From Pocillopora damicornis (lineage: Eukaryota), in contig NW_020844463.1 of the NCBI RefSeq assembly GCF_003704095.1, positions 124,001 through 188,000 of the forward strand: a stretch of DNA of 64,000 bases. Direction: 5' to 3'. This document shows positions 2,000-59,400 of the stretch, piece by piece; positions within the stretch are counted from its first letter, which is position 1; every line of letters starts with the position of its first letter. Under the pieces are notes generated by a model. The model was not told where the DNA came from. It worked only from the letters and a program-made list of their open reading frames with translations, and ran no database searches. The position numbers and the translations under genes were made by a program.

Positions 2000-2190
2000 G
2001 CTCTCTTCTGTTTTAAAGCACTAAGGAAGCAGCTGTAAGTAGAGAAAACAATCGACAAGTCTCCTGTTTCTCTCCTACGATACTTTTCTGCTTTAGCTGC
2101 TTCCAGTGTGCATTATGATAGGACAGAACGCAGTCGTAGCTTCTTTCTTCGTTGACTTTAAATTTTAATTTCCAATTACAAAGCCCTTAC

Positions 2191-3099
2191 TGTGGTAGTT
2201 CGCCACAAATCCAGACCTTGAAACTGANNNNNNNNNNGTAAAAGTGACAAAAAGCTCGTGAGAAGAACTTGAAATTCTTTGTGGCAGCAAGTCTCCATCA
2301 TAGCGCCCGATCAGGGGAGAAGAAGAAGATGAGCCATCGTAAACAGTAACAGGATCATAACCTCGTTCAGTTTGAAAACGAGTAAAGGAAAGTTCCAGAC
2401 TTAGATTTGANNNNNNNNNNNNNNNNNNNNNNNNNNNNNNNNNNNNNNNNNNNNNNNNNNNNNNNNNNNNNNNNNNNNNNNNNNNNNNNNNNNNNNNNNN
2501 NNNNNNNNNNNNNNNNNNNNNNNNNNNNNNNNNNNNNNNNNNNNNNNNNNNNNNNNNNNNNNNNNNNNNNNNNNNNNNNNNNNNNNNNNNNNNNNNNNNN
2601 NNNNNNNNNNNNNNNNNNNNNNNNNNNNNNNNNNNNNNNNNNNNNNNNNNNNNNNNNNNNNNNNNNNNNNNNNNNNNNNNNNNNNNNNNNNNNNNNNNNN
2701 NNNNNNNNNNNNNNNNNNNNNNNNNNNNNNNNNNNNNNNNNNNNNNNNNNNNNNNNNNNNNNNNNNNNNNNNNNNNNNNNNNNNNNNNNNNNNNNNNNNN
2801 NNNNNNNNNNNNNNNNNNNNNNNNNNNNNNNNNNNNNNNNNNNNNNNNNNNNNNNNNNNNNNNNNNNNNNNNNNNNNNNNNNNNNNNNNNNNNNNNNNNN
2901 NNNNNNNNNNNNNNNNNGTACTCTGTGTCAAATTTCATGAAAAACAGTTCTATGTTTTCGTTGGCAGACAGGTTCCAGATGCAGTGCATGTTGTTTAGGT
3001 AGTTTCCAGTGTTGTTTGAGTATATCAGACCGGTTGTACTTGTTTCTATCTTCATGANNNNNNNNNNAGAACTTGTGGCTGTCACGGATGGTTGTTCAA
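2191..3099 (-). CDS. Paralog A CUB domains (two partial CUBs flanking a gap)
   Basis: [35 protein letters not shown] and [37 protein letters not shown]...SGFVANY. The ELxFxxFxTE motif appears twice, so there are at least two CUB units. Confidence 0.8.
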
Positions 3100-20605: not shown

Positions 20606-20755
20606 TTAATTATAACGGAGACACCGTCTCAAATAAAGTTTGACTGCTGCTGCTATTATGACTAAAAATATTATTACCACGACCTGCACTACTATTACAG
20701 TTGACAAGATATCAAAATCATGAGTTTTCGAGGGTGTTTTGATATCAGTTGACGT
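20606..20755 (-). CDS. Paralog B in-frame post-stop extension (49 aa): linker, TM helix, basic tail
   Basis: TGA then TSTDIKTPSKTHDFDILSTVIVVQVVVIIFLVIIAAAVKLYLRRCLRYN then TAA. Confidence 0.7.
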   Translation of the reverse strand, partial: TSTDIKTPSKTHDFDILSTVIVVQVVVIIFLVIIAAAVKLYLRRCLRYN

Positions 20756-23700
20756 TCAAATATTACATTCAACACCTGCATCCTCAGCGTGCGAGCAATA
20801 GCGAGATGAACCGTATGGACAGTCCAGCAATGATTTTTCGTCCCCTTTGCATCTGACAAGGTTTCTATGGATAGGACCGGAACCTTGACCGTAAATTGCG
20901 CTTCCACGCGCTCTGTGTGCGCCTTTGTAACCTAGCTGACGGCAGATGACTGTTGCATCATTCATGTCCCATTTGTGATCACAGATAGTTCCCCACTGCC
21001 CTCCTATTAGAACCTCTACGCGGCCATATTTTCTACCTCCGGATATCCTTACATTGGTAGAACCAAAACTGCACTTCATGCTGGCGTCTTGTTTATGAGT
21101 ACAATCGTGGTCTCCCCATTTTCGTTTATTGCACTTGTGGAGATGAGTCTCACCCCCTGAGCAGCGCACGTCGTCAAGCCAGATTGGTCCACTTCCTTCG
21201 CCATGTGCAGCGCTCGTAAACGCCCTATCAGCAAGTTTGAAGCCAAGCTCTCTACAAACTACGTTAGCAGCGTTACGGTCCCAGTTGTCATGGCAGACGG
21301 TCCCCCATTTACCATCGTAGAAAATTTCCACTCTGCCAGTAAACTTGTTGTGCGAAGAGGTGCTATTCATACGCACACTGCCATCCGTTATTGCTATCAA
21401 TAAAATTAAATAAGATATATTTTGGATAAAAAAAAAATAATAATCGTAGAGGGAAGAAGGGCAAGCAAAAAAAAACCGGACCCCCACCCCCCTCGTTGGC
21501 TCAAGGTCTGCATCCGCCACTGATACTCTTAAAAAAACAAAGACTGTACTTGAATCACAAAAACCAATTCTTGTGCCCCTTAAGCCACTGTACATTTCTC
21601 TATTCGCTAAGAGCGAAAATTATGTTTTAAATCCACGCAGAATACACCACATAGCATGTATTTTGGTGGACAAGTTTATAACTTAGTCGAATACGGCGAA
21701 TTCTTTGAAAGGTAAATTAAAAAAAGGATGTGAGTGAACTTTCAATGATAGGGTCAACTGAGGGACAGTAACTTATTCAGCAAAATCGAAAAAAACCTTA
21801 CATGATAAAACAACAAAGCCAATATATGCATCAATTCTTTTCTAAAGGCTTGCCTATCACAAGTAAACTGGTATAATGTCCATTTAACGGCGTATCTCAA
21901 TACCCATTCCTGATTAGAAAACTTCATAAAATAACGCCCCTATATATACACACCGCGCTTGGTTAACTCACGCTGTCTCTTCTCAGATAGTGACAGTAAA
22001 CCGTACGCCTTGTTTTCGTTTATACAGGACCTCATTTAAACTAGCTTAAAGCTGAACTGGGTCAGCCAGCACAAATAATATACAATACATACGTACAACC
22101 TACCTCGATATTCTGCCAAAAATCCTCTATATTCTTTACTAGCATCAGATTCAAATCTCACAAAAAGATTATTGAATGTGCTTGTGAACGATTCCTGGGG
22201 GGTAGTGTCTCCAAACAAAGTACCAATCACAGGAGCAGAAGCTGATCCACCATCGTGCATGAAGACCTTATCTTGCTTATCCTCAGTGTCCAAACGTAAA
22301 AAGACAAGATCAATTTGTCCATTTGACGTTATATTCCATGTGCAGTTCATGTTACTTTTGTATTTAGTAGCCTTTGAATTATCAATTGGCTCGATGTACC
22401 CTGCTGAATTTGATAGCCATATTGTTGTATCGGCACAGGAAGAAGTTACCGTCGCGTAAGGTGCTGTAAAAGTAGCGAGAGTATATTTTTAAAGATGATT
22501 TTGTCCTGATAAGTCGATATGTTCTACATAGGTGTGTGAATGACGCGTGAATTTTTCAGTCTGGGATCAGATGTTCCGTCTCAGCGTTTTTTGCTATCAA
22601 AACATAGACGCTATTGATCAAGGGCAGTTTAAATAAGGTTTCAAAGGGGATAACCAACAGCCGAATTTTAACTATTATAAGAAAAAAAAAGTTACTGTAA
22701 AAACCTTCCTTTAAACCATAACGGAAAGAACTTTAAAATGGCCGTATAAACCGTCACCCCACTGAGATCCTCTTTAAGAAATGAAATAATTTGCCTCGCA
22801 TGTAAGCAAAGTGACACCAATCAGTAAAGCAGTTGCTGCAGGAATAAATTGTGAGAAAATTTGTCGATGAAATCGGTGTTTTGTGAATAAATGATTGAAA
22901 CTAGGACGTTAGAGAAAGTCACAATAGGAAAAAAAAGCGTCATGGGAAACGGAGGCATCAAACGAAAAGTTTAAACATTTTTCAGCAGGAGATTCGCAAT
23001 TAACTGTTGGAAACTTACCCCCACATTCTTTAACGATTCCTGCCAGGCCGGTTCCTGCCAGGCCAAGTTCACATCTACATCTATAGGAACCAGGAACATT
23101 CTCGCAGGTCGATTTGGCAGGGCAGGTATAAAAACTGCTTCCCAGGTCGCACTCCTTCCAGTCTGTTTCCCACGGAAAAAAAAAGGAAAAAAAAGTGTTT
23201 GCACACTTTAACTACAACATATTCATATCTCAAGATCACAATAACTTGGTTTTATTCCAAATATCAAACAGTTTGATTGGTTTTTTTTTCTAGTGTTAAA
23301 TGTTGAAATAATCTGCCATAGGGTTGAAAATATCAACTCGCTGTTGACTGAGTTATTCTGTTAGTCATAATTTAAATCAAGATACCTTCACATTTTTTGT
23401 TTGCATCCAGAAAGAATCCTTTATTGCATTGGCAGTCGTAACCGTCAGGCTCATTAACGCAATGAGAATCAGCTGGGCAGTCATAATTTTTGTCAGCACA
23501 TTCATCATAATCTGTAAAAGAAAGCAAACACAAAATGGTTATTCAGTTTCTTATTATGGTTATAGCAGGTGAAATAAATAAAAAACAGTCTATGACTGCA
23601 TGTGCCTACTGCTGTATAGCTGTGTAGTACTGCAGTGTAGTAAAGCAATGTTGTATAATTTCCTTTTCATCCTTTTTATTTTAAAAGACCGGTTGCAAAA

Positions 23701-43150: not shown

Positions 43151-46100
43151 TTAACTTGAACGGAAACACCGAGTCAAATATAGATTTATTGCAACCGCTA
43201 TTATCACTCACACTATAATTACTGTGATTTGCGTTACTATTACAAGCAACAAGACATCAGAGACATCAGTGTTTGAGGGTTTTCTGATGTCAGTAAACAG
43301 TCGTGTGCTGCACACCACACTTGCATACTCAAAGTGATAACAATGGTGATAGGTACCATAAGGACAGTCAAGCACATCTTTCTCGCTTCCCTCGCAGTAA
43401 ACATGATCTCTATGGAAAGTACCGGAGCTTCGCCCGTATTGCTCGCCACGCTGCGCGTGTTTTGCACCTTTTATGAAGCCTAACTGATGGCAGACGACAT
43501 TTGCATCCAAGATGTCCCACGTGTGGTCACATATAATTCCCCATTGGCCCCCTACTAAAACTTCAACACGGCCATAGTTGTGTGAACCTCCCGCCAACCG
43601 AAAAATATTGGAACCATGGGTGCACCGCACGCTAACGTCTCGTTTATAAGTGCAGTCGTGTTTTCCCCATTCGTCATGAGTGCATTCGTGGAGATATTTT
43701 TCATCAGGGGAGCAAGGCCGATGCCGACGTGTTTTGCAGACAGCTTGGCTTCAAAGAAGAAGCCGCACAACCTTGTAAGGACGCTACTCATGGCGAAGGA
43801 AGCGGACCTATTTGGCTTGACCACTTGGTTTGTTCAGGAAATTTTCCACCAATGTTTCTGGATCTTGCTATTTATTGCTCTTCCTTTTACTACACAGAAA
43901 TTTGAACTTGGGAACAATTCCTGCAGGGGGTATCGTTTATGGTGATGTATTCCGCTCTGTTTGTTCTCCTATGGCCATTTCACTCGAAATGTGCGTTTTT
44001 CGACAAATCTGATGGCATCTTCAGTGATAGAAAACCGTCTTGTAAAGGCCATCGTTTGACAGTGAGGTCTTAAGCAGGTCTTTGTTGGACTCAAAGGTGT
44101 GCAATAATTGCTATAATCGCTACATATATTACTGTGGCGTTCGGTGCTGTGAAATCAAAGAAAGTTAGGTTCAGAAATAAGGCTTTCGCTGATATGTCAA
44201 CACGTCATAAACCCCACATACCTTGATCATTGTGTAAATAAAAGTTAATAAAGCATAAGTAGCTGGAAGAAAATCAAGGATAAGAGTGTCTCGAATATTT
44301 ACTTCGAGAGCTTCATCAATGAGATCTGTTTGAGATTCATACTTCGACGACAAAGGAAACAAAAAGTGAAACTCTGGTTAGCTTAAAAAAAGCCTGTGAG
44401 TCTAAACGCTAGATCGCAAGAAGGCAAAAGAGGAAAACATTGTAATGCAGGCGTATTAAACAAATGTCAAAGACCTACCTCCACAGGTTATATCGGTTCC
44501 TGCTAAGCCTGGATCACATCTTCATCCATAGGTACCAAGAATATTCTTGCAGGTGGCATTGACATGTCAAGTTGACGCAATCTCTTTGCTCTTGCATTCG
44601 TTCACATCTGTTTTGCATTGAAAAAGAAAAAAAAAGACTTTGCAAACCATTCCTACAGCATATTCATATCTCAAGGACGTAGTCGACTTTGTCCGCCGAT
44701 GTTGCTTTCTGTTGTATTCAAGTCATACATATCAAATACACTCAATCTGACTCGATTCGTCTACGGTAATTGACAAATCGACTCACCGGAAATCGAATCA
44801 TGGGTCTTAGGGGTCGAATCGTCCGATTTAAGTGAAATCGAGTCAATTCGATAACAGTTTAGCCCTCTCTCGTAGTAAGCTGTAGAACATTTGTAAGTGA
44901 CTTCCGGTATGACATTTCTATCTCAAGAGGAACTCTTTTATTCAGATGACCGTAATAAGCTCGATTCGAAGCTTGACTTAAACGAATCGTATCAATTTGG
45001 GTATATTGGACAACCTTCTTCCAAGTGACGAGAGATTAATTTTCTTTCTGACATCAAATGTTGAAATAACCTACCTAGGTGTTGAAAATCGCGACGCACC
45101 ATAGAATAAGTTTTAGATAAAATCTAGATACCTGTACGGTAGTTAATGATTTTATCCAAATTGAATCCTTTGTTACAAATGCATTTGTAGTGGCCAATAA
45201 CATTTACGCAATGAGAATAGGGTGGACAGTGATAATTTTGGTCAGCTCATTCATCATAATCTGCAAAAGAAAACAAAAACAAAATGGTGATTCCGTTTCT
45301 TTTTAAGGTGATGGCAGGCGAAATAAAAATTATGGCAAAACTTAATTTTTCAATGAAGCATAACAGTTACTGCACAATTCCCTCGATGTCCCGTGAGATA
45401 AAAATTAGCTATACTGTACTTCATGTTCTTTAAGGCACTAACCTCTCTTGCAGGTAAATCGGTGACAATCAGTACAGTTTACGTCATTCCATCCGTAATG
45501 ATGATTTTTGAGGAAGCCAAGAGTATGAACACAATCTTCATTGCCATAGTTGTTTGGTTGGCCCTCTGCCCAACGCCTAAATTTGGATTTGCTCTTATCG
45601 CTCCACGCAAAATTCCCTTCAGAGCTGATATCATTGAGCCCCAACCAGGAATGCTCTCCACCATGCAGACTTTGAACAAAAACGTTTTCTTCTTGGTTAC
45701 GTATGCTGGGAAGGTCAGCTTGCTTACGGCGACAAGCTCTATCGCTGTTGTCCCAGTTATCGCATGCAGCCACTTCATTGTAGCAATAGTTATCGAAATA
45801 GTGCCAGTCGTCTTTGCAACTGCTGTCTGTAAGATAAACACGAGTTACGGTCTTTTTTTCTTTTTTGAATTAATTATAGTCATACTCTTACAACTATTTA
45901 GTTCTTAGGTCGTGGAAAGAACGATGAAGGGCTTATTTTCTTAGAGTTTTTTTTCCCTATAAAATGTGAAGAATGATTCTTCAGCTGTAAGTCTAGTGTT
46001 ATCTTTCCTACTCTTTATGTTATCCTTTATTTGCAGGTATACTTATGTAATTTTTTTCCTTCTGAATGTGATGCGTTCCATGTATAATGAGAAACGCTCG

Positions 46101-50345: not shown

Positions 50346-53068
50346 AAGACACCCACATTATATGCAGTTATGGTAGAGGTTACAGAATAAAATAACAGAA
50401 ATAATCTCAAAAATACGTCGTGTATTTCCAGCCAAAGGACAATTATGAAATTAGAATAGGGAAAAAGTTCAAAAAAATTACAGGTTCAAACACGAGTTGA
50501 GAGTTACTTTTCTTTTTAATTTTCTAGGCTAAACAGAGGAGGTTAAAACGTTAGGGAAAAACGGTGGGGAAAGCATTCATACCTGGCGACTTTAAGAGAT
50601 TATATAAGAGAAGCCCATGCGATTCTGGCGTATTGTTTTACTGACTGACTGTGCTCACGTATATACACTTCAATCGACCAGTGATGTCTTGACACAAAGT
50701 AGTTTACCGTTCTTTCTTTCAATTTTGGCTCATTTTCCCAAACCGAAATTGTAAGTCACGCGCAAATGAATATAATGTCAACTGATACTGACATCATACA
50801 CTTCATCTGAAGGAGGAAACATTCCCTATTCCCTATTTTCTCAAACCATTACGAACAACAACGAAGGTCCCAAGCTGTTTAAAGATACCGCTGACTAGCA
50901 TGCGTGTTGATTGCTTTGTATCCTTCTTAACTGAAGGCTACAAGGTCACTTTTCCGTAATATCGTCCAAATGCCTCAGGTAACGCATTGAAACAGATACA
51001 AGGAGCCTCGAATGCCTCTTTGTGCCTTTTTTCGCTGGAAAAACTGTCCTAAATGAAGCTTCGTGAGTCATCCGCCGTAAACGCTTCGATTTTGATCATG
51101 TGACCTTTACGTCACACGTGTGTACATGATGCAAAGTTTTTAATACAAGGTGTCAGTGTGAAAACTTCCAAACAATGTGGAGGGAGAAAGTAAACATCTT
51201 TTGCAGGGAAGTAGATGTGGTCAAAATAAAAATTTGGAGGATGTTACAGTGGAACAGTTGCGGGCAGAAGCCAGATGTATTGTTTAGCATCCAGGGTTTG
51301 AGGAAACTGGTGAAGGCTGACTCCTTCGCCATTTTTTTGTTTTTGGATGCAAAACATCTCTACACAGCGCTTCCCTGGTTTTCGTTTTCTTTGTTTTACA
51401 TCCTATTGTTTTCCGTCCATATCGACAATGCCAACGCGGCTAAGAGTGGTACAGTTTTGGTTAACTTGAGCGTGAACGTATATATAAATAACTATATATA
51501 TATATATGATCGCGTAAGCGTGAAATTCTGAGTCACAAAAGAGTTATGTCTTATTGATTTGTCCAACTTTTATGATATACCACGCATTATACCGCAAGGA
51601 TAGACTGTGATCAAGATTTATTTATTTATATACATACATATATATATATTTTCTTTTTTTAAGGGTCGTAATTTGAGAAACATTACGTGCTTGTTATTTC
51701 CATAGCACGAGTTTGTCGCTGACTTGGTTCCTTCTTTTTACCAAAGCACTGCGTTTTAAACGGTGGAAGCTAGGTAGTCCCATGACATTTGCTTTAATGG
51801 TTTCCTCTCTCAGGTTGTCGGTTTGTTTTATTTGCGATAAACGAGCGTGAGTAATTTATTGTTCACTCAGCTGACAGTGGTACATTTTTGAAACGAGTAA
51901 CCTTTCGTACAGGATTTATTTCATCATGTTTCCGGTCGCAAATGAGAAACAACTATATAGGTGGCCTATATCAGAATGGAACAAATCTTATTTTTTTTTC
52001 CGCTCGTAAATTTTGGCTGTGGCTGAACAGCGAGGGCGAAGTTGTTACTTTAAGGCCTTGATATGACGCTTTTTACTGCCTTACACACGTGTGACGTATC
52101 ATATCACGTTACCTGATCGGAACGTTTTCAAAATGGGCGTCGATTAAGCGTCAAGAAAAATTGTAGGAAATTTCGTTTTGCATAATATATCGTTTATTTG
52201 CTCAGTCAGGATTCTTCAACCGAAGAGAAATGTATTGGGACATAAAAAAGGGGAAAATTTGGCGTCAGTTACCCATTAAAACTAGTTTATCAGAGTAAGA
52301 ATATGTTACCAGGAACAAGTATGGCTTTTTCACGATGATAGTTTCCAGGTTTAAAAAAAGTCACTTCCTACTTACATACTCAGTTCCTTTGCCCTGACAG
52401 CTCAACCTCATCAAAACATTGGTAACAGGAGCAATTAGCAGATTAACGATACAGACAAGAGAGCCTATTCCCACATACACCCTCCTCAGTCCTGTTAGCT
52501 TATTCTGGACATGGCATTTCAAGAATGACTTATATGCCACAAATTTTCCATTTCCATGACTAATTATTTTGTAATGGTGTTTACAAGTTTGGAAAATGGT
52601 TAGATCGAAATATGATACAAAGACTTGCCAGTTGATGGTTAACTTTCAACATATCTATAAAATTTATCAATTGTTGTGTACCATCTAAAAATTTTCAACC
52701 TTTTTAATATAGCCAATAACGACATCAACTCAACTTTTAAAGTAAAGAGAAAACTTGATCGATATTGGGAATTGATTTCTGTGATGTAAAAATGAAATCC
52801 AGGTATTATCTTGAGCCTTCTACAAATGGTCGAATCCTAGGTCTCTCTTCGTGATAGAGTTTTAATTACGATATTCTAGTTCTAGCTTATCTTCCTTTAA
52901 AATAAAACTTTCGCAGTGTCAGACAAATTTCTTATTTCAGTAGCTAGAGTTGCAAAATCATGGACAGTTGACTTCCATAAGATATAGATTTTTCTAAAAA
53001 CAAAATAAGAGTTTGTGGGCAGCTAAGAGTGATCGACTAGCGATTTTTTTTTTAATTGGTTTCCAATT

Positions 53069-53092
53069 TTTATTCATTTCAAAGTGAACTGA
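53069..53092 (-). terminator. Candidate polyadenylation signal of paralog D
   Basis: TCAGTTCACTTTGAAA-TG-AATAAA, about 70 nt downstream of the extension stop codon. Confidence 0.55.
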
Positions 53093-53145
53093 ATCCCCAG
53101 AAACGTCACGAGTGGCACGTGTCAAGGCTCGTTTTGTTCTCGTTT

Positions 53146-53403
53146 TTAGCTATTATCCATATGCTGATTGCAAGCTTCCCACACAGTTGTGCTCTCATTA
53201 TCGAGGAGAGCTGCAGTGTTTTCAGTAATGTTTGTATTAACTATGAAATTCTTTCTACCCGAACGGAAACGACGAATCACATATAGTTTTACCACTACAG
53301 CTATTATAACTAATACTACTATTAGTCCGACCTGAATCACTATTACAGGTAAAAGGACATCCATGACCTCAGTGTTAGAAGGTGTCTTAATATCAGTTAA
53401 CGT
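53146..53403 (-). CDS. Paralog D in-frame post-stop extension (85 aa): linker, TM helix, cytoplasmic tail
   Basis: TGA then TLTDIKTPSNTEVMDVLLPVIVIQVGLIVVLVIIAVVVKLYVIRRFRSGRKNF...HMDNS then TAA. The ORF-track entry 53146..53364 is in the same frame as 53404..54042. Confidence 0.75.
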   Translation of the reverse strand, partial: TLTDIKTPSNTEVMDVLLPVIVIQVGLIVVLVIIAVVVKLYVIRRFRSGRKNFIVNTNITENTAALLDNESTTVWEACNQHMDNS

Positions 53404-56400
53404 TCAATTATGACAAACAACACTTGCATCTTCAGAGTGCCAGCAATGATGAGATGGACAGTGTGGGCAGTCCAGCAAAGATTCTTCGTTCCCCTCGCAA
53501 TAGACATGGCTTCTTTGGATGGGACCGGAGCCTTGTCCGTATGCTGCGCCTCGAGGTGCAGAGGTCGCACCTTTGAAACCGAGCTGACGGCAGACGACTT
53601 TTGCATCATTGATGTCCCAGGTGTGATCACAGATAGTGCCCCATTGGCCTCCAACTAAAACTTCAACGCGGCCATAATTGTGGGATCCACCCGCTAGCCG
53701 AATGATGGAAGAGCCATATGTACACTTCACGCTGGCGTCTCGTCCATGCGTGCAGTCATGCTTTCCCCATCCTCGATGCCTGCAGTCGTGGAGATTTTTC
53801 TCACTCCCTGAGCAAGCCAAATCGTCAAGCCAAATTGGTCCGCTTCCTTGGCCATGATAAGCGCTTCTGTAAGCTTGCAAGGCTTGTTTGAAGCCAAGCT
53901 GTCTGCATATCACGTGAGCATCGTTCAGGTCCCAAGCATCATCGCAGATGGTCCCCCATTTGCCATCATAGAAAACCTCTACTCTTCCAGTTGATGGGCT
54001 GGTGCTATTTATACGTACGCTGCCATCAGTAATTGCTGGCAAAAAAAATTAAATTTTTTTTTGAGGTGAATACAGACTAAATAAACTTAAAATATTAACT
54101 GTCTCCTTTTCTGGCTGTCTTTTTATTATCATTACAATTATTGTATTATTTAATTTTTTACACCTTTTCCCCAAGGGGACATCATTTGCAATAATGTGAG
54201 AACTTTCCCTATGGCCATTTTACGCGTAATTTATCTTTTTTTGACAAATTTAATGGCATTGCACCAGTCGATAAAGTCCGGGTATTAAATTTGGATGTAA
54301 AAGAGTATCATAGAATGGGGTGATAACGCTATCAGTTCGATTGCACAAAAAAAGAAGTTCCTGAGTACACAAAACTTTGATTCATTACCGAGATCCGAAA
54401 TGAAATTCCTCTAAATAGTATCCATAAATTTTTGCTATTATAACAATCTTGTCTTTCTGGCAACAAAATATTTCCTGATGAAGCTTGGTTTGTGAGTCAA
54501 AGAAAATTTGCGATTGACTTTCTGATTAAACAAGAAATTGTTGTGTGGAAATAACAACATAGTCTACATAATGAGGCGCTGAGGTCTTTCTGAAGGGTCT
54601 CCTTCTAAGTCAATCCCATGAAATTACTTAGTTACTGCGAAGGAAATAGTATAATTGAGAGTAAAAAAAGAGTAAAAGAAATCATAACTTTTGCTTACCT
54701 CGATAACGAGCCCGAAATCCTGCAAATTCTTTCGAGATATCTGACGTAAACCTCACATAAAGGTTGTTGGACGTGCTTGTCAAAGATTGCTTGGGCAAAG
54801 TGTTTCCAAATAAAGTACCAATCAAAGGAGAAGAACGTGATACACCATCGTACACAGTGACGATATCGACCTTATCCTCAGTTTTTAAGCGAATAAAAAC
54901 AAGTTCAATATGTCCATTTGAGGTTATATTCCATGTACAGTCCATGTCACTTTTGTAGGTTTCCACATGACCAGGCACAGGGGCATCATTGGACTCGATA
55001 TAGCCAGTTGAATCTGACTGCCATACAGTTAAATTGGTACAAGAAGATATTACGGTGGCGTTCGGTGCTGTGGAGTTAATAAATGAAAACAAGTTTAGGA
55101 TATAAGGCTTCGCCGCTTACATTTCAATATATTCAATACAAAAATTAAGTTTATCAGTGTGAGAATAGTTCAATCTTTCTATCAGTAAAGAGTAACTGTA
55201 AAAGTTTTACTGTTTATGCCGATGACACGCAACTAATCTGCTGAGAAACAGAGACCAAACTCGTCGATAACAAAAGTGTGAAAGTTAAGTTTGAAAAAAA
55301 CAACAACAACAGCAAACAAAAAAAAAACAAAAGGTAGTAGAGGCGTTTAATTACTTTGCAGAAACTTACCACCACAGGTTTTACCGGTTCCTGCTAAGCC
55401 TGGAGCACATCGACATCTATAGGTACCAGGAATATTCTCGCAGCGAGCTTTGACATGACATGTGTAGGTTCCCAAGCGGCATTCATCCATATCTGTTTCG
55501 TATTAAAAGAATAAGAAAACGGCCTTTCACTGAGATATACAGACATAGACATGAGTTTTCTGATTTATTCCAAAGATCAGTCACTTCGATTCTATCGCTA
55601 TATGTCAAACACTGAAGTTAACTTTCGAGGGGGTAAGAAAGGTTAATGAAATGAACGTACTCTTTTAAAAATTTGAAATTCTAAGACAGCATATTTTATA
55701 ATTTATTATCAGCTAATGTATCTATTTATTGTTAAAATTAACAAACCTTCGCACTCCTTGTTACATCCAAACGGTATGAAAGGTGAATGAAACAAACGTA
55801 CTCTCTTTTTAAATATGAAATTCTAAGACAGCATATTTTATGAGTACTTATTAATTATTATATCTGTTTATTGTTAAAATTAACAAACCTTGACAGTCCT
55901 TGTTGGCATCCAAACGGAAACCCTTATTACACTTGCAGGTGTATGAGCCATCATTGTTAATGCAATGAGAATCTGCTGGACAGTGATAATTATAGTCGAT
56001 ACATTCATCATAATCTGAAAAAAAGATTTTTAAAAAGATTGTTAAAAAGCATATAGGTGGTTATTTGGTAGGTTATTTTGCTGATCACATCTGGTGAAAT
56101 TTTATGTACTCGAAATTGTTTTTATAGCTATTCAAAACGAAACAAAGCATCTAGCCTAACTGTCTCCCCGCTCTTTTGTTAACTACTACGATACACCATA
56201 CCATCCAATCTTCATTTGAACGTTCATATAAAACCGCCAGATCTGCCACATGCACACTCATTTTACTAACCTTTCTTGCAGGTAAATCTGTGACAATCAG
56301 TGCAGTTCACGTCATTCCACTCGTAGTGATGGTTTTTAAGGAAGCCAAGAGTATGAACACAGTCTTCATTGCCATAGTTGTTTGGTTGGTCCTTCGCCCA

Positions 56401-59400
56401 GTCCTTAAATTTAAATGTGCTCCCATCGCTCCACACGAACTTCCCTTCTGAGTTGATATCGGTGAGCCCTAGCCAAGAGTGCTCTCCGCCATGCAGACTC
56501 TGGACATAAACGTTTTCTTCCTGGCTGTGTATGCTTGGAAGGTTAGCTCCCTGCGTGGCGCATTTTCCTTGGCTGCTGCCCCACGAATCACATGCAGCCA
56601 CTTGTCTATAGCAATACCCTCTGAAATAATTCCAGTCGTCGTCACAAATGCTGTCTGTGAAATAAACACAATGGGCTAGTTTTTTCGTTTATTCATTTAC
56701 TTTTTTAACTTTGTAAAGTTTTATTGCTCGGAACACCCGAAACTTCAATCAGCACGGGGGGAGCAACTCACGAGAAGTTCAAAGCAGGTAAGAAATCTCA
56801 CCTCCCATCACAGCATATGAGACGTTCAAAGGGTCAAACCGTTGCACGTAGAGCTCTTTGACACAAATTCGAAATCCAGACGTTGTGATAGACTTGGAAG
56901 CAAAAAGGAAACAAACTGTCTGGTTAGCGAATTTATGTAATTACTCTAAAGATTCGTGACCCTAATCAAGATTAAGAATTATAAATAAAAAATGTTCCTA
57001 GTAAATGCAAGATTAACGCTACAAAACCTTCGCAAACGTTTAGACAAAGCATCATCTGGTTTTCTAAAAGAATATCAGATTATATCGGGACTAGGAAAGT
57101 AAACCATGCCGACGCGTTAATATCTGCTTTCCTATTGTGGAAGATAATGATGATGGAAAAAGCCGCGGCTTAACGAGGTAGTTCAGAAGCAACTTACTAC
57201 ACAAACCGTTTTCCAAGAAATGTTGTTACCTCAATCCAGCTTACGATTCCATTGCATTCCGCAGCAGCATTTCCTCCACCAGTAGAATGCTTGGGAGTGA
57301 CCAGCACCGTTGGTGGGTAGGTATAAGCCGATCGAGAGTAGGTCACATCCTTTATATGGATCAGTGTAAGTAAATATGATCAGTCAATAAGTTAATCAAG
57401 AGATTAACCAACCATTCACCAATGGAATATTTTAATTACCAAGGTAATCACTGACATAGCTTTAACTGATGTAAATTTAATGAAATCAAAACAATTAGTC
57501 AAAGGCGAATTTGTGTGTCTTGTCTAGTCAAGAAAATCGCGGCTCTTTTCATATATCATGGCCCTCATGTGGATCATGTCTATACATCACAGGTGCATAT
57601 CATAAAAGTGCTTCGTTGAATGTCGCAAAAACTGAACAGCTCCTAGTCTGGTAAAAAACCCTGAGGAGCTTATAAAATGTCCAAACAACATCCTGCGAAA
57701 AGTCAAGAGTACTGGATAACTCATTAGCTCATCAGAAAGGGGTAAATTTGTTAATAAATTACTTGTAAAAAAAGAAAAAGAAAAGTGAGAAGAAGAAGAA
57801 CAAAAACTGCAACTGGGGATTACTATAGTTGAAACTTGATACAATTTTTTTCTATCAGTGCTACACTCATCCAAAAACAAACTACATTGTTCCTCTTTTG
57901 AAGAGACGCAACACCTACCTTACAGAAAGCGTAGTTGTATTTTATTGATGGCAAGCCAGAGTTGGGAAAGCTGACAACGCTGCTCTCTTTGAACACTGGC
58001 CTTGGTGTTTTGCCAAATGCCAACCAATTCTAAGACAAATATATAATTAATAAGTTGCGAGAAAAGAGAATGGTGTTCAGCAGCTAAATCATGTCAAACT
58101 AAATTTTTTAAATAGGCTGGTCTTAAACTGGTGTCGGACTTGCAGGGGAATGGCAGGTTGCGTTATTTCATAAATTGTTCTCTCTAAGTTTTGCATTGCC
58201 AAGTATGAACAAGAAATTCAAAATTCAAATTCATTCACCGATAAAAAATTTTTTTAGTCTAAATTTTTTTTACTTCCCATTGCAAAGTGCCATGATTGCA
58301 TGGAAATGATATCCTTTCGTTATTATTATCTCTCCTTGTCATTACGTGTGATGTTAGTAAGAGTCATACTTATGGGCGGTAGGTGGATGAGGGTTTCAAT
58401 TTCCGTAAATTTTGCAAAATTCACGGGAACTTGACAAAACCTACCACTGAAATATCATCATGAACTCCTGCAAAGTTTTGAAGCTCCCTGAGGCAGATCT
58501 TAAAAGAATTTGTAGAAACATCCTCAAGCCACACAGAGGTAGCATCGTGCATGAGACTTGATCTGTAATGGACAGCTGTTGCAAAGATCGACGGTGGCTC
58601 AGAATACTTCCCCTAAATTTATAGAAAAGAATACGTTTTTGAATTAGAGGGAAAACCAATAATGTACAATATAAACTCGTTCACTCGACCTCCTTGAGGC
58701 CAATTTCTGTCATCGTAATATATGGTTTCTTGGATTAACGAAGTGAATGGAGACTATGAAAAGCTTATTCTTTAGGAAGTGCAGTAAACTAGTCGACATC
58801 ACGCGCTTGAAATCTATAAAAATGTGTCCTCCACTTGTTTTTATTGAAAATATTGCTTCCAAGATGTGCTGAGTGCCTATCAGATAATCCAATAGCTTGA
58901 GGTAGAATTCTTTTTTTTTTTTGTCAATATTGAACTGAAAAAAAAAATGAGATAGTGAATCATCACAAGGAAAGACTGTTTGAAACCGGACATTTTTGTC
59001 CATCAGTAAGACATAAGGAGAGTCTTATGCGACTCCATATAATCTCATACAAAAATTACAGAGTAGCGCATACATTTGGAAAAGTGACTGTTCTGCAGCT
59101 AGTTCCAGTCCACCAAGTTAAGAACATCTCCTCTCCTGCTATTCCTCCAGGTGGCGCTCCCTGATAGGCCACCCAGTCTATTAAAGCGAAGCTGTCTGCG
59201 GGGTAGTCATTCCTTCCAGCTCGCGTAACGCAGGCTGTGAACTGAGTGGTGTTAATGCTCTCGACCCAAGGCGTGGTAGCTTCGTGTACCAACGTGTCAT
59301 CAGAATAGTTGAAGTGGTTAACAGTGAGTTGTACGTATATTTTCATATGAGGATAGAATATGAACGGTTTAAACTTGATTACATCACACTGATCTTCGGC

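Follow-up and report, generated by a model that had tools for sequence, protein, structure and literature searches.

Does a single in-frame stop codon divide a secreted coral protein from a membrane-anchored form of the same protein, or does it only leave a former membrane anchor stranded behind it? This question is raised by gene D, which lies on the minus strand of a 64,000-nucleotide (nt) stretch of the Pocillopora damicornis genome (NCBI RefSeq assembly GCF_003704095.1, contig NW_020844463.1, positions 124,001 to 188,000). We refer to the whole of this stretch as the window, and positions are given in its coordinates unless another locus is named. The minus strand of the window carries a tandem array of paralogous multi-exon genes, spaced 10–25 kb apart, with exons for Kazal, lectin-like, C-type lectin (CTLD), CUB, and two SRCR domains. 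In gene D, a TGA follows the second SRCR domain, and the same frame continues into a predicted transmembrane (TM) helix. An earlier examination of the letters alone (the sequence-only reading) proposed programmed readthrough of this TGA, with one mRNA giving a mostly secreted protein and a minor membrane receptor. With about even confidence, we favour ordinary termination at the UGA, followed by a TM relic that has not yet decayed, and we consider this more likely than readthrough.

Organization of gene D and its extension

The relevant features of gene D are listed below.

53407..54035, minus strand: last coding exon, with two SRCR domains, ending ...VVCHN (Pfam SRCR and the RNA joint 54035/54699)
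53404..53406, minus strand: in-frame TGA in the context AAT TGA ACG (direct reading and RNA contigs)
53225..53403, minus strand: extension in the transcript frame, 60 codons counting an extra base behind 53234, then TGA at 53224–53222
53290..53358, minus strand: predicted TM helix, extension codons 16–38, with a conserved internal Gln (Kyte–Doolittle)
53146..53224, minus strand: 25 additional codons, open in this assembly only and out of frame in all transcripts and other copies
53069..53074, minus strand: AATAAA 3' of the extension (direct reading)

The SRCR exon matched PF00530 in two stretches (E = 1.3e-64, 215 bits, against a cut-off of 26.1), which makes the encoded protein a member of the SRCR superfamily. 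Direct reading bore out the sequence-only reading in that the second SRCR domain ends VVCHN-TGA at 53406–53404 and that the frame beyond it encodes, in order, a linker, a hydrophobic helix, a basic stop-transfer segment, and a short tail. The predicted helix comprises 23 residues, with a Kyte–Doolittle 19-residue mean of 3.46. Among the relatives introduced below, this mean was 3.1–3.5 in D, B, B', B'', and the C ortholog, versus at most 1.5 in the outgroups. Basic segments of the K-x-Y-x-x-R-R/K type follow the predicted helix in D, B, B', B'', and the C ortholog (L047), giving these segments the predicted character of type-I anchors.

The extension had been described as 85 codons long, but it spans 60 codons in all four RNA runs and in every D-type copy fetched from elsewhere. 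A base missing from the assembly at 53234/53235 (plus strand) is present in 4/4 RNA runs and in the D-type copies L007-9 and L051, and the 85-codon frame is specific to this assembly because all transcripts and the other D-type copies carry this 1-nt insertion. The absence of this base reflects an assembly error or a private allele. The sequence-only reading had also argued from the AATAAA that the TM segment should be in the mRNA. The AATAAA does lie downstream of the extension, and the RNA contigs do contain the TM segment; however, they run beyond this putative poly(A) signal to about 52782.

The stop codon and the TM segment in the mRNA

Logan contigs from four RNA runs, belonging to four studies, were aligned to positions 52500–56700. 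Three introns upstream of the stop (54036–54698, 55068–55369, and 55493–55888) were spliced out in 4/4 runs, and these were the only joints found; a splice that removes the TGA was rejected on this basis. Single contigs running across the TGA and into the TM segment, namely X1 (52782–53589), X5 (52783–53971), and X12 (53327–53971), were unspliced and collinear with the genome, so that the unspliced coverage named by the sequence-only reading as a check is present in all three. Neither a joint nor an alternative letter occurred at 53404–53406 in the contigs of the four runs, a type of data that is unable to reveal rare isoforms or low-level editing. The AG just behind the stop of D has no conserved counterpart in B. 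Thus, gene D is expressed and spliced, and its TGA is genuine and is kept in the mRNA together with the TM segment.

Other simple explanations of the TGA were also rejected. The contigs extend to about 52782, which argues against polyadenylation ahead of the TM segment. An assembly error at the TGA is contradicted by the RNA contigs and by independent metagenome scaffolds, which also have TGA, and a genome-wide reassignment of TGA is contradicted by long SRCR, CUB, and CTLD exons free of in-frame TGA. Far downstream of the AATAAA, at 52500–52950, the contig depth was high (>1000 in X7), with loose ends near 52551, 52736, and 52811; a long 3' untranslated region (3'UTR), a repeat, or another transcript could account for this.

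The junction codon in related genes

Relatives were collected by a protein search with the SRCR exon of D, a search with the extension against 1.84 billion representatives, and a search with the B exon, after which the corresponding DNA was fetched. Exons were searched singly. Sequencing runs in which the stretch occurs carry coral or marine metagenome labels, and the nearest copies sit on Tara metagenome scaffolds. The codon at the position of the D TGA (the junction codon) and the state of the frame behind it were as follows.

D-type copies L007-9 (94% amino acid identity) and L051: TGA; 60 codons, open
B-type copies L013/14 (identical to B), B' (L046/L054), and B'' (L052/53): TGA; TM frame open
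C-type ortholog L047: CGA; intact TM frame; first SRCR domain interrupted by the same stops as in the window copy C
Outgroup E (L017), the next gene of the array (C1098, about 192.9–193.2 kb, beyond the window): TAG; decayed
Outgroup L012, a transcript of E: TAG; decayed
Outgroup L015: TGA; decayed
Outgroup L010: TAG; decayed
Outgroup L011: TAA; decayed

The corresponding features of paralogs B and C within the window are listed below.

20756..20758, minus strand: in-frame TGA of paralog B, ATT TGA ACG; identical in L013/L014 and kept in B' and B''
20609..20755, minus strand: extension of paralog B, 49 codons (linker, TM, basic tail), then TAA at 20608–20606
43301..43303, minus strand: junction codon CGA (Arg) of paralog C, where B and D have TGA; same CGA in the ortholog L047
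43208..43210, minus strand: TGA within the TM frame of the window copy C; TTA in the ortholog L047
43631..44000, minus strand: first SRCR domain of paralog C, degenerate and interrupted by stops in all three frames; same stops in L047

A TGA followed by an intact TM frame was therefore found in six lineages, three D-type and three B-type, and both the position and the identity of the stop codon are conserved among orthologs (TGA in D, L007-9, L051, B, L013/14, B', and B''). B' and B'' are each 76–78% identical to B at the amino acid level. As the sequence-only reading had stated, B has its TGA at the codon aligned with that of D, shares the ACG-TYA-ACT-GAT context with it, and encodes a homologous TM peptide. 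The further statement that B and D differ only by synonymous or conservative changes and have no indels was half right: no indels occur over the 49 codons, but there are 43 nucleotide and 21 amino acid differences (21/49 residues), with a nonsynonymous-to-synonymous rate ratio (omega) of 0.38–0.48. Paralog C, which had served as a comparison, does have the CGA, but its first SRCR domain is broken, as is that of its ortholog.

In the search of 1.84 billion representatives, the extension was found solely in D-, B-, and C-type sequences. In distant coral homologs (Oculina, Acropora, and Porites), the protein ends 1–3 residues past the last SRCR cysteine. The decay in the five outgroups takes the form of early in-frame stops or frameshifts, accompanied in E by a deletion of the helix core; in E, L012, and L015, the downstream sequence is still recognisably homologous to the extension. 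In the nucleotide tree of the second SRCR domain (SRCR2), the base of which is unresolved, C, D, and the B group clustered together (support 95/98), to the exclusion of E, L015, and L010/11. The similarity of D to the other paralogs is a mosaic along the exon, which suggests gene conversion within the array.

Selection on the extension

A purpose-built codon model of the GY94 type was applied to 49 codons in 8 sequences. On the deep stem branches, the omega of the extension was 0.39, and omega = 1 was rejected (p = 0.0047); on the D and B stems alone, it was 0.34 (p = 0.019). These substitution patterns clearly point to an extension that was formerly translated and under selection. On the tip branches of the D and B groups, where the TGA is certain, omega was 0.73–0.79 (p = 0.38–0.56 versus 1), and the test of equality between the tip and deep branches gave p = 0.20. 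Thus, the coding signature claimed past the stop by the sequence-only reading stands on the deep branches, and the value on the branches with a certain TGA (0.73, p = 0.38) does not differ from 1.

Branches with TGA at both ends carried 18 nonsynonymous and 9 synonymous changes, a nonsynonymous share of 0.67 versus a neutral share of 0.70. The differences at the three codon positions numbered 13/9/21 between B and D and 6/6/6 between B and B'. Between D and its orthologs, the extension diverged by 3.3–4.9%, the 3'UTR by 3.8–4.5%, and the SRCR exon by 1.9–4.9%. Tests for new stops and for loss of hydrophobicity on the post-TGA branches were without power, with 2–3% of mutations giving stops and 9–11% giving polar residues. 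As far as these counts indicate, the substitutions accumulated since the TGA became certain are compatible with neutrality, and the sole sign of constraint would be the lack of indels in the B group, in which pairwise comparisons gave the following.

Extension, 150 nt: 15–20 substitutions per pair, 0 gap events
Next 300 nt of 3'UTR: 40–57 substitutions per pair, 5–6 gap events
SRCR exon, 600 nt: 82–95 substitutions per pair, 0–2 gap events

Special nucleotide conservation just past the stop of the B group was considered and rejected, since the invariant run of 37 nt is matched by upstream runs of 34 and 29 nt. The 119-nt block from -87 to +31 has 7 variable sites, 4 of which fall in the last four codons ahead of the stop (window 20759–20770, with L046 and L052 aligned), where ECNI, DCDV, or DCAI is encoded; variable sites are otherwise sparse in the block.

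Candidate recoding signals around the stop codon

All TGA lineages share the stop context UGA-ACG. None of these lineages has UGA-C, UGA-CUAG, or a known 3' hexanucleotide, and the context is therefore not of the leaky type. In mammalian cells, a purine at +4 of UGA is associated with efficient termination, the median readthrough of UGA is 0.19%, and several per cent is reached only with C at +4 (PMC5829715).

One structural element was found behind the stop.

53356..53394, minus strand: AU-rich hairpin starting 9 nt past the stop (nt 10–18 with nt 40–48), in 8/8 sequences

The hairpin has 5–10 contiguous base pairs (bp) in 8/8 sequences, and the region folds at -6 to -13 kcal/mol; in B', it contains two mismatches and 5 contiguous bp. 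For a stimulatory RNA structure, a start about 8 nt past the stop would be expected. Its cells were paired in 89% of cases, versus 31–48% when the partners were slid. Covariation among the 8 sequences was not above that of shuffles (203/500), and part of the hairpin is explained by two Asp-Ile/Val dipeptides with self-complementary codons. No selenocysteine insertion sequence (SECIS) was detected: the window contained no Rfam match at the gathering score, and 52400–53450 contained none at E values up to 10. Selenocysteine was rejected on the basis of this absence from the window and 3'UTR scans.

A probably stranded membrane anchor or possible readthrough

According to the explanation we prefer, D and B would be expressed members of the array, with translation stopping at the UGA after the second SRCR domain. 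The main, and probably the sole relevant, product would be a secreted protein, and the relatives in other corals end alike. The linker, TM helix, and basic tail would be what is left of a membrane-anchored form in this sub-family, which, during the divergence of the paralogs, may have been translated through a sense junction codon such as the CGA (Arg) of lineage C. Changes between stop and sense at this codon would have occurred more than once, or would have been copied between neighbouring paralogs by gene conversion, and the time since then would have been too short for decay of the stranded segment in D and B. Basal leakage by a few per thousand ribosomes may, at most, yield a trace of anchored protein. 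Whereas the anatomy, the content of the mRNA, the former selection on the extension, and the decay in the relatives are shown, we infer both the sequence of changes at the junction codon and the lack of meaningful readthrough. The relic explanation fits because the recent branches appear neutral, five relatives have decayed, the stop context is not leaky, a sense-codon lineage exists, and the array is mosaic. The 1-nt deletion that the assembly, or the individual sequenced, has in the tail of the extension also speaks for a relic. Given the sense-codon lineage C and the mosaic exon, the TM segment could have been maintained while a sense codon was translated.

Several results weigh against a relic. 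It needs at least two changes at one codon, or gene conversion, and also some luck, in that the frame is still open through the TM segment and the basic tail in all six TGA lineages. An intact gene carrying a sense codon at the junction was not found among the relatives. The outgroups and D share ...CAT AAT T-- A.., with C as the first base of the junction codon in the broken copy C only, and by parsimony the stop is probably ancestral and the CGA of C derived. Were the stop ancestral, the low omega of the D and B stems would have no easy explanation other than translation beyond it. A mutational hotspot was considered as a source of recurrent TGA from CGA but was not supported: the observed/expected ratio of CpG is 0.85, and divergence at CpG sites is not faster than at the remaining C/G sites. 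CpG sites are thus not hypermutable, and repeated CGA-to-TGA changes receive no help from this direction. Finally, the B-group extension has 0 gap events against about 4 expected (P about 0.02).

Functional programmed readthrough, which we regard as possible but doubtful, would let a near-cognate tRNA decode the UGA in a minority of ribosomes, adding 49–60 codons. The product would be a type-I anchor, and one mRNA would supply mostly secreted protein and a small pool of membrane receptor; the hairpin may help. Most of the results just listed speak for it, namely the TGA followed by an open TM and basic-tail frame in three D-type and three B-type lineages, a stop that is probably ancestral, low omega values on the deep branches and on the D and B stems, and an indel-free B-group extension next to an indel-rich 3'UTR. 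A single change in C would account for the ancestral stop, the low stem omega, and the indel-free B group together. Furthermore, the entire segment is unspliced in the mRNA, the hairpin stands in 8/8 sequences at a spacing typical of viral stimulators, and engineered constructs with a leaky stop and a TM domain demonstrate the principle in animal cells (PMC6973322).

Against readthrough, the UGA-A context favours termination, omega on the post-TGA branches is indistinguishable from 1, and the extension of D diverges at a rate like that of its 3'UTR. The hairpin is weak, AU-rich, and broken in B', and its covariation is at chance level; the low-divergence block at the stop of the B group is matched by similar runs upstream. 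The extension has decayed in relatives with a stop at the same codon. Present-day translation of the extension is itself a prediction from the DNA. The dual secreted and membrane reading put forward from the sequence therefore survives in part: neither a splice nor early polyadenylation parts the stop from the TM segment and six TGA lineages are open, but the UGA-A context and the decayed stop-bearing relatives tell against it.

It is improbable that the junction codon is polymorphic or exchanged between paralogs, with sense and TGA alleles coexisting and recombination or conversion preserving the TM segment without readthrough. Such exchange would agree with the mosaic similarity between D and the other paralogs, with the low-divergence blocks of the B group, which suggest conversion tracts, with the arrangement of the genes in a tandem array at 10–25 kb spacing, and with the CGA in the C-type copies. 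However, TGA was present in every D-type and B-type sequence sampled (four RNA runs and Tara scaffolds from several samples), and the B, C, and D extensions differ from one another by about 30%, so that they show no sign of a recent TM-segment transfer. That the UGA is recoded by selenocysteine insertion or by A-to-I editing to UGG is very improbable, since, although the C-x-x-TGA spacing (last SRCR cysteine, C-x-x-U) is kept in D, B, B', and B'' and low-level editing is compatible with the contig data, the scans described above found no SECIS or other Rfam family, the TAG and TAA junction codons of the outgroups cannot encode selenocysteine, the RNA contigs of the four runs carry the genomic A, and the TGA lies outside the predicted RNA helix.

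Further observations on the array and its relatives

The outgroup sequences E, L012, and L015 contain a Tyr/Trp/Arg-rich, low-complexity insert of about 20 residues in the last loop of SRCR2, the sequence of which varies between copies. E is transcribed, as L012 is a spliced transcript contig. In the comparison of C with L047 (L047:1500-2500), which represents two species or strains, the stops in the first SRCR domain were common to both, SRCR2 and the TM frame were open in L047, and 7/7 differences in SRCR2 were nonsynonymous. The CUB exon of paralog A (window 2165–3085) is interrupted by masked N near 2400–2940, and its SRCR/TM end would be expected before the start of the window; a search of the coral's own 234-Mb assembly of 4393 contigs with the extension gave no match to that end. 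On the Tara scaffold of one D-type copy (L051:1511-1880), a 1-nt deletion within SRCR2 represents a frameshifted allele or an assembly error.

Public open reading frame calls on these genes are inconsistent, with some ending at the TGA and others giving Trp. The proteins P0004, P0121, P0124, and P0125 (loci L007, L051, and L046) have Trp at coral TGA codons, apparently through genetic code 4, and these read-through versions in the protein databases are not reproduced by table 11. Because the DNA has TGA where the public proteins have Trp, the gene caller used the wrong genetic code.

Comparison with known systems and significance

Known animal readthrough genes (the Drosophila candidates and mammalian AQP4, MDH1, LDHB, VEGFA, and OPRK1) have a coding signature beyond a conserved stop. 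The coral genes resemble them in that the UGA is kept across lineages, the frame behind it is open, omega on the deep branches is below 1, and the extension would add a targeting or topology signal. They differ in having UGA-A instead of UGA-C or UGA-CUAG, in having a sense-codon paralog, in adding an entire TM anchor, and in that no coding signature can be demonstrated on the branches with a certain stop. Regulation of a different kind is used by immunoglobulin heavy chains, in which one locus also yields soluble and anchored recognition proteins, as D could; they do so by alternative splicing and polyadenylation, whereas the contigs of D are collinear from the SRCR exon through the TM segment, with no alternative splice or early poly(A) seen. 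To our knowledge, no natural readthrough event adds a whole TM anchor, and our literature search returned no natural case of a leaky stop followed by a TM segment and nothing on readthrough in these corals.

The closest architectural likeness is to engineered display, in which a leaky stop between a secreted protein and a TM domain gives a small, fixed, surface-displayed fraction; the secreted ectodomain, stop, linker, and TM anchor follow one another there as in the coral genes (cited in PMC6973322). Engineered display uses deliberately leaky contexts or drugs, whereas the coral context is not leaky and its function is putative. In domain content, the coral proteins resemble the DMBT1/SSC5D-like SRCR group and the secreted CUB-SRCR proteins of corals, with tandem SRCR domains after CUB and CTLD, and their nearest annotated homologs are publicly named 'DMBT1-like'. 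The order Kazal, lectin-like, CTLD, CUB, and two SRCR domains, together with the stranded TM segment, sets this coral sub-family apart from the DMBT1/SSC5D-like group.

The locus is a candidate for readthrough and not yet a finding. It is conceivable, though we would not expect it, that low-level readthrough of UGA in the D- and B-type genes yields a secreted lectin/SRCR pattern-recognition protein and a membrane-bound receptor from a single mRNA. If so, these genes would be a natural counterpart of engineered display, the first topology-changing case of readthrough, and the first readthrough described in a cnidarian. They would offer animals a new route, independent of alternative splicing, from one transcript to soluble and membrane forms of an immune-type receptor, in a reef-building coral and in a gene family that plausibly recognises microbes or symbionts, and annotation pipelines would be missing the receptor forms. 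If the TM segment is a relic, as we prefer to think, the array and its relatives would provide a clean natural series in which a family of recognition genes switches at one codon between an anchored and a secreted form, and in which the pace at which a stranded TM segment decays may be followed.

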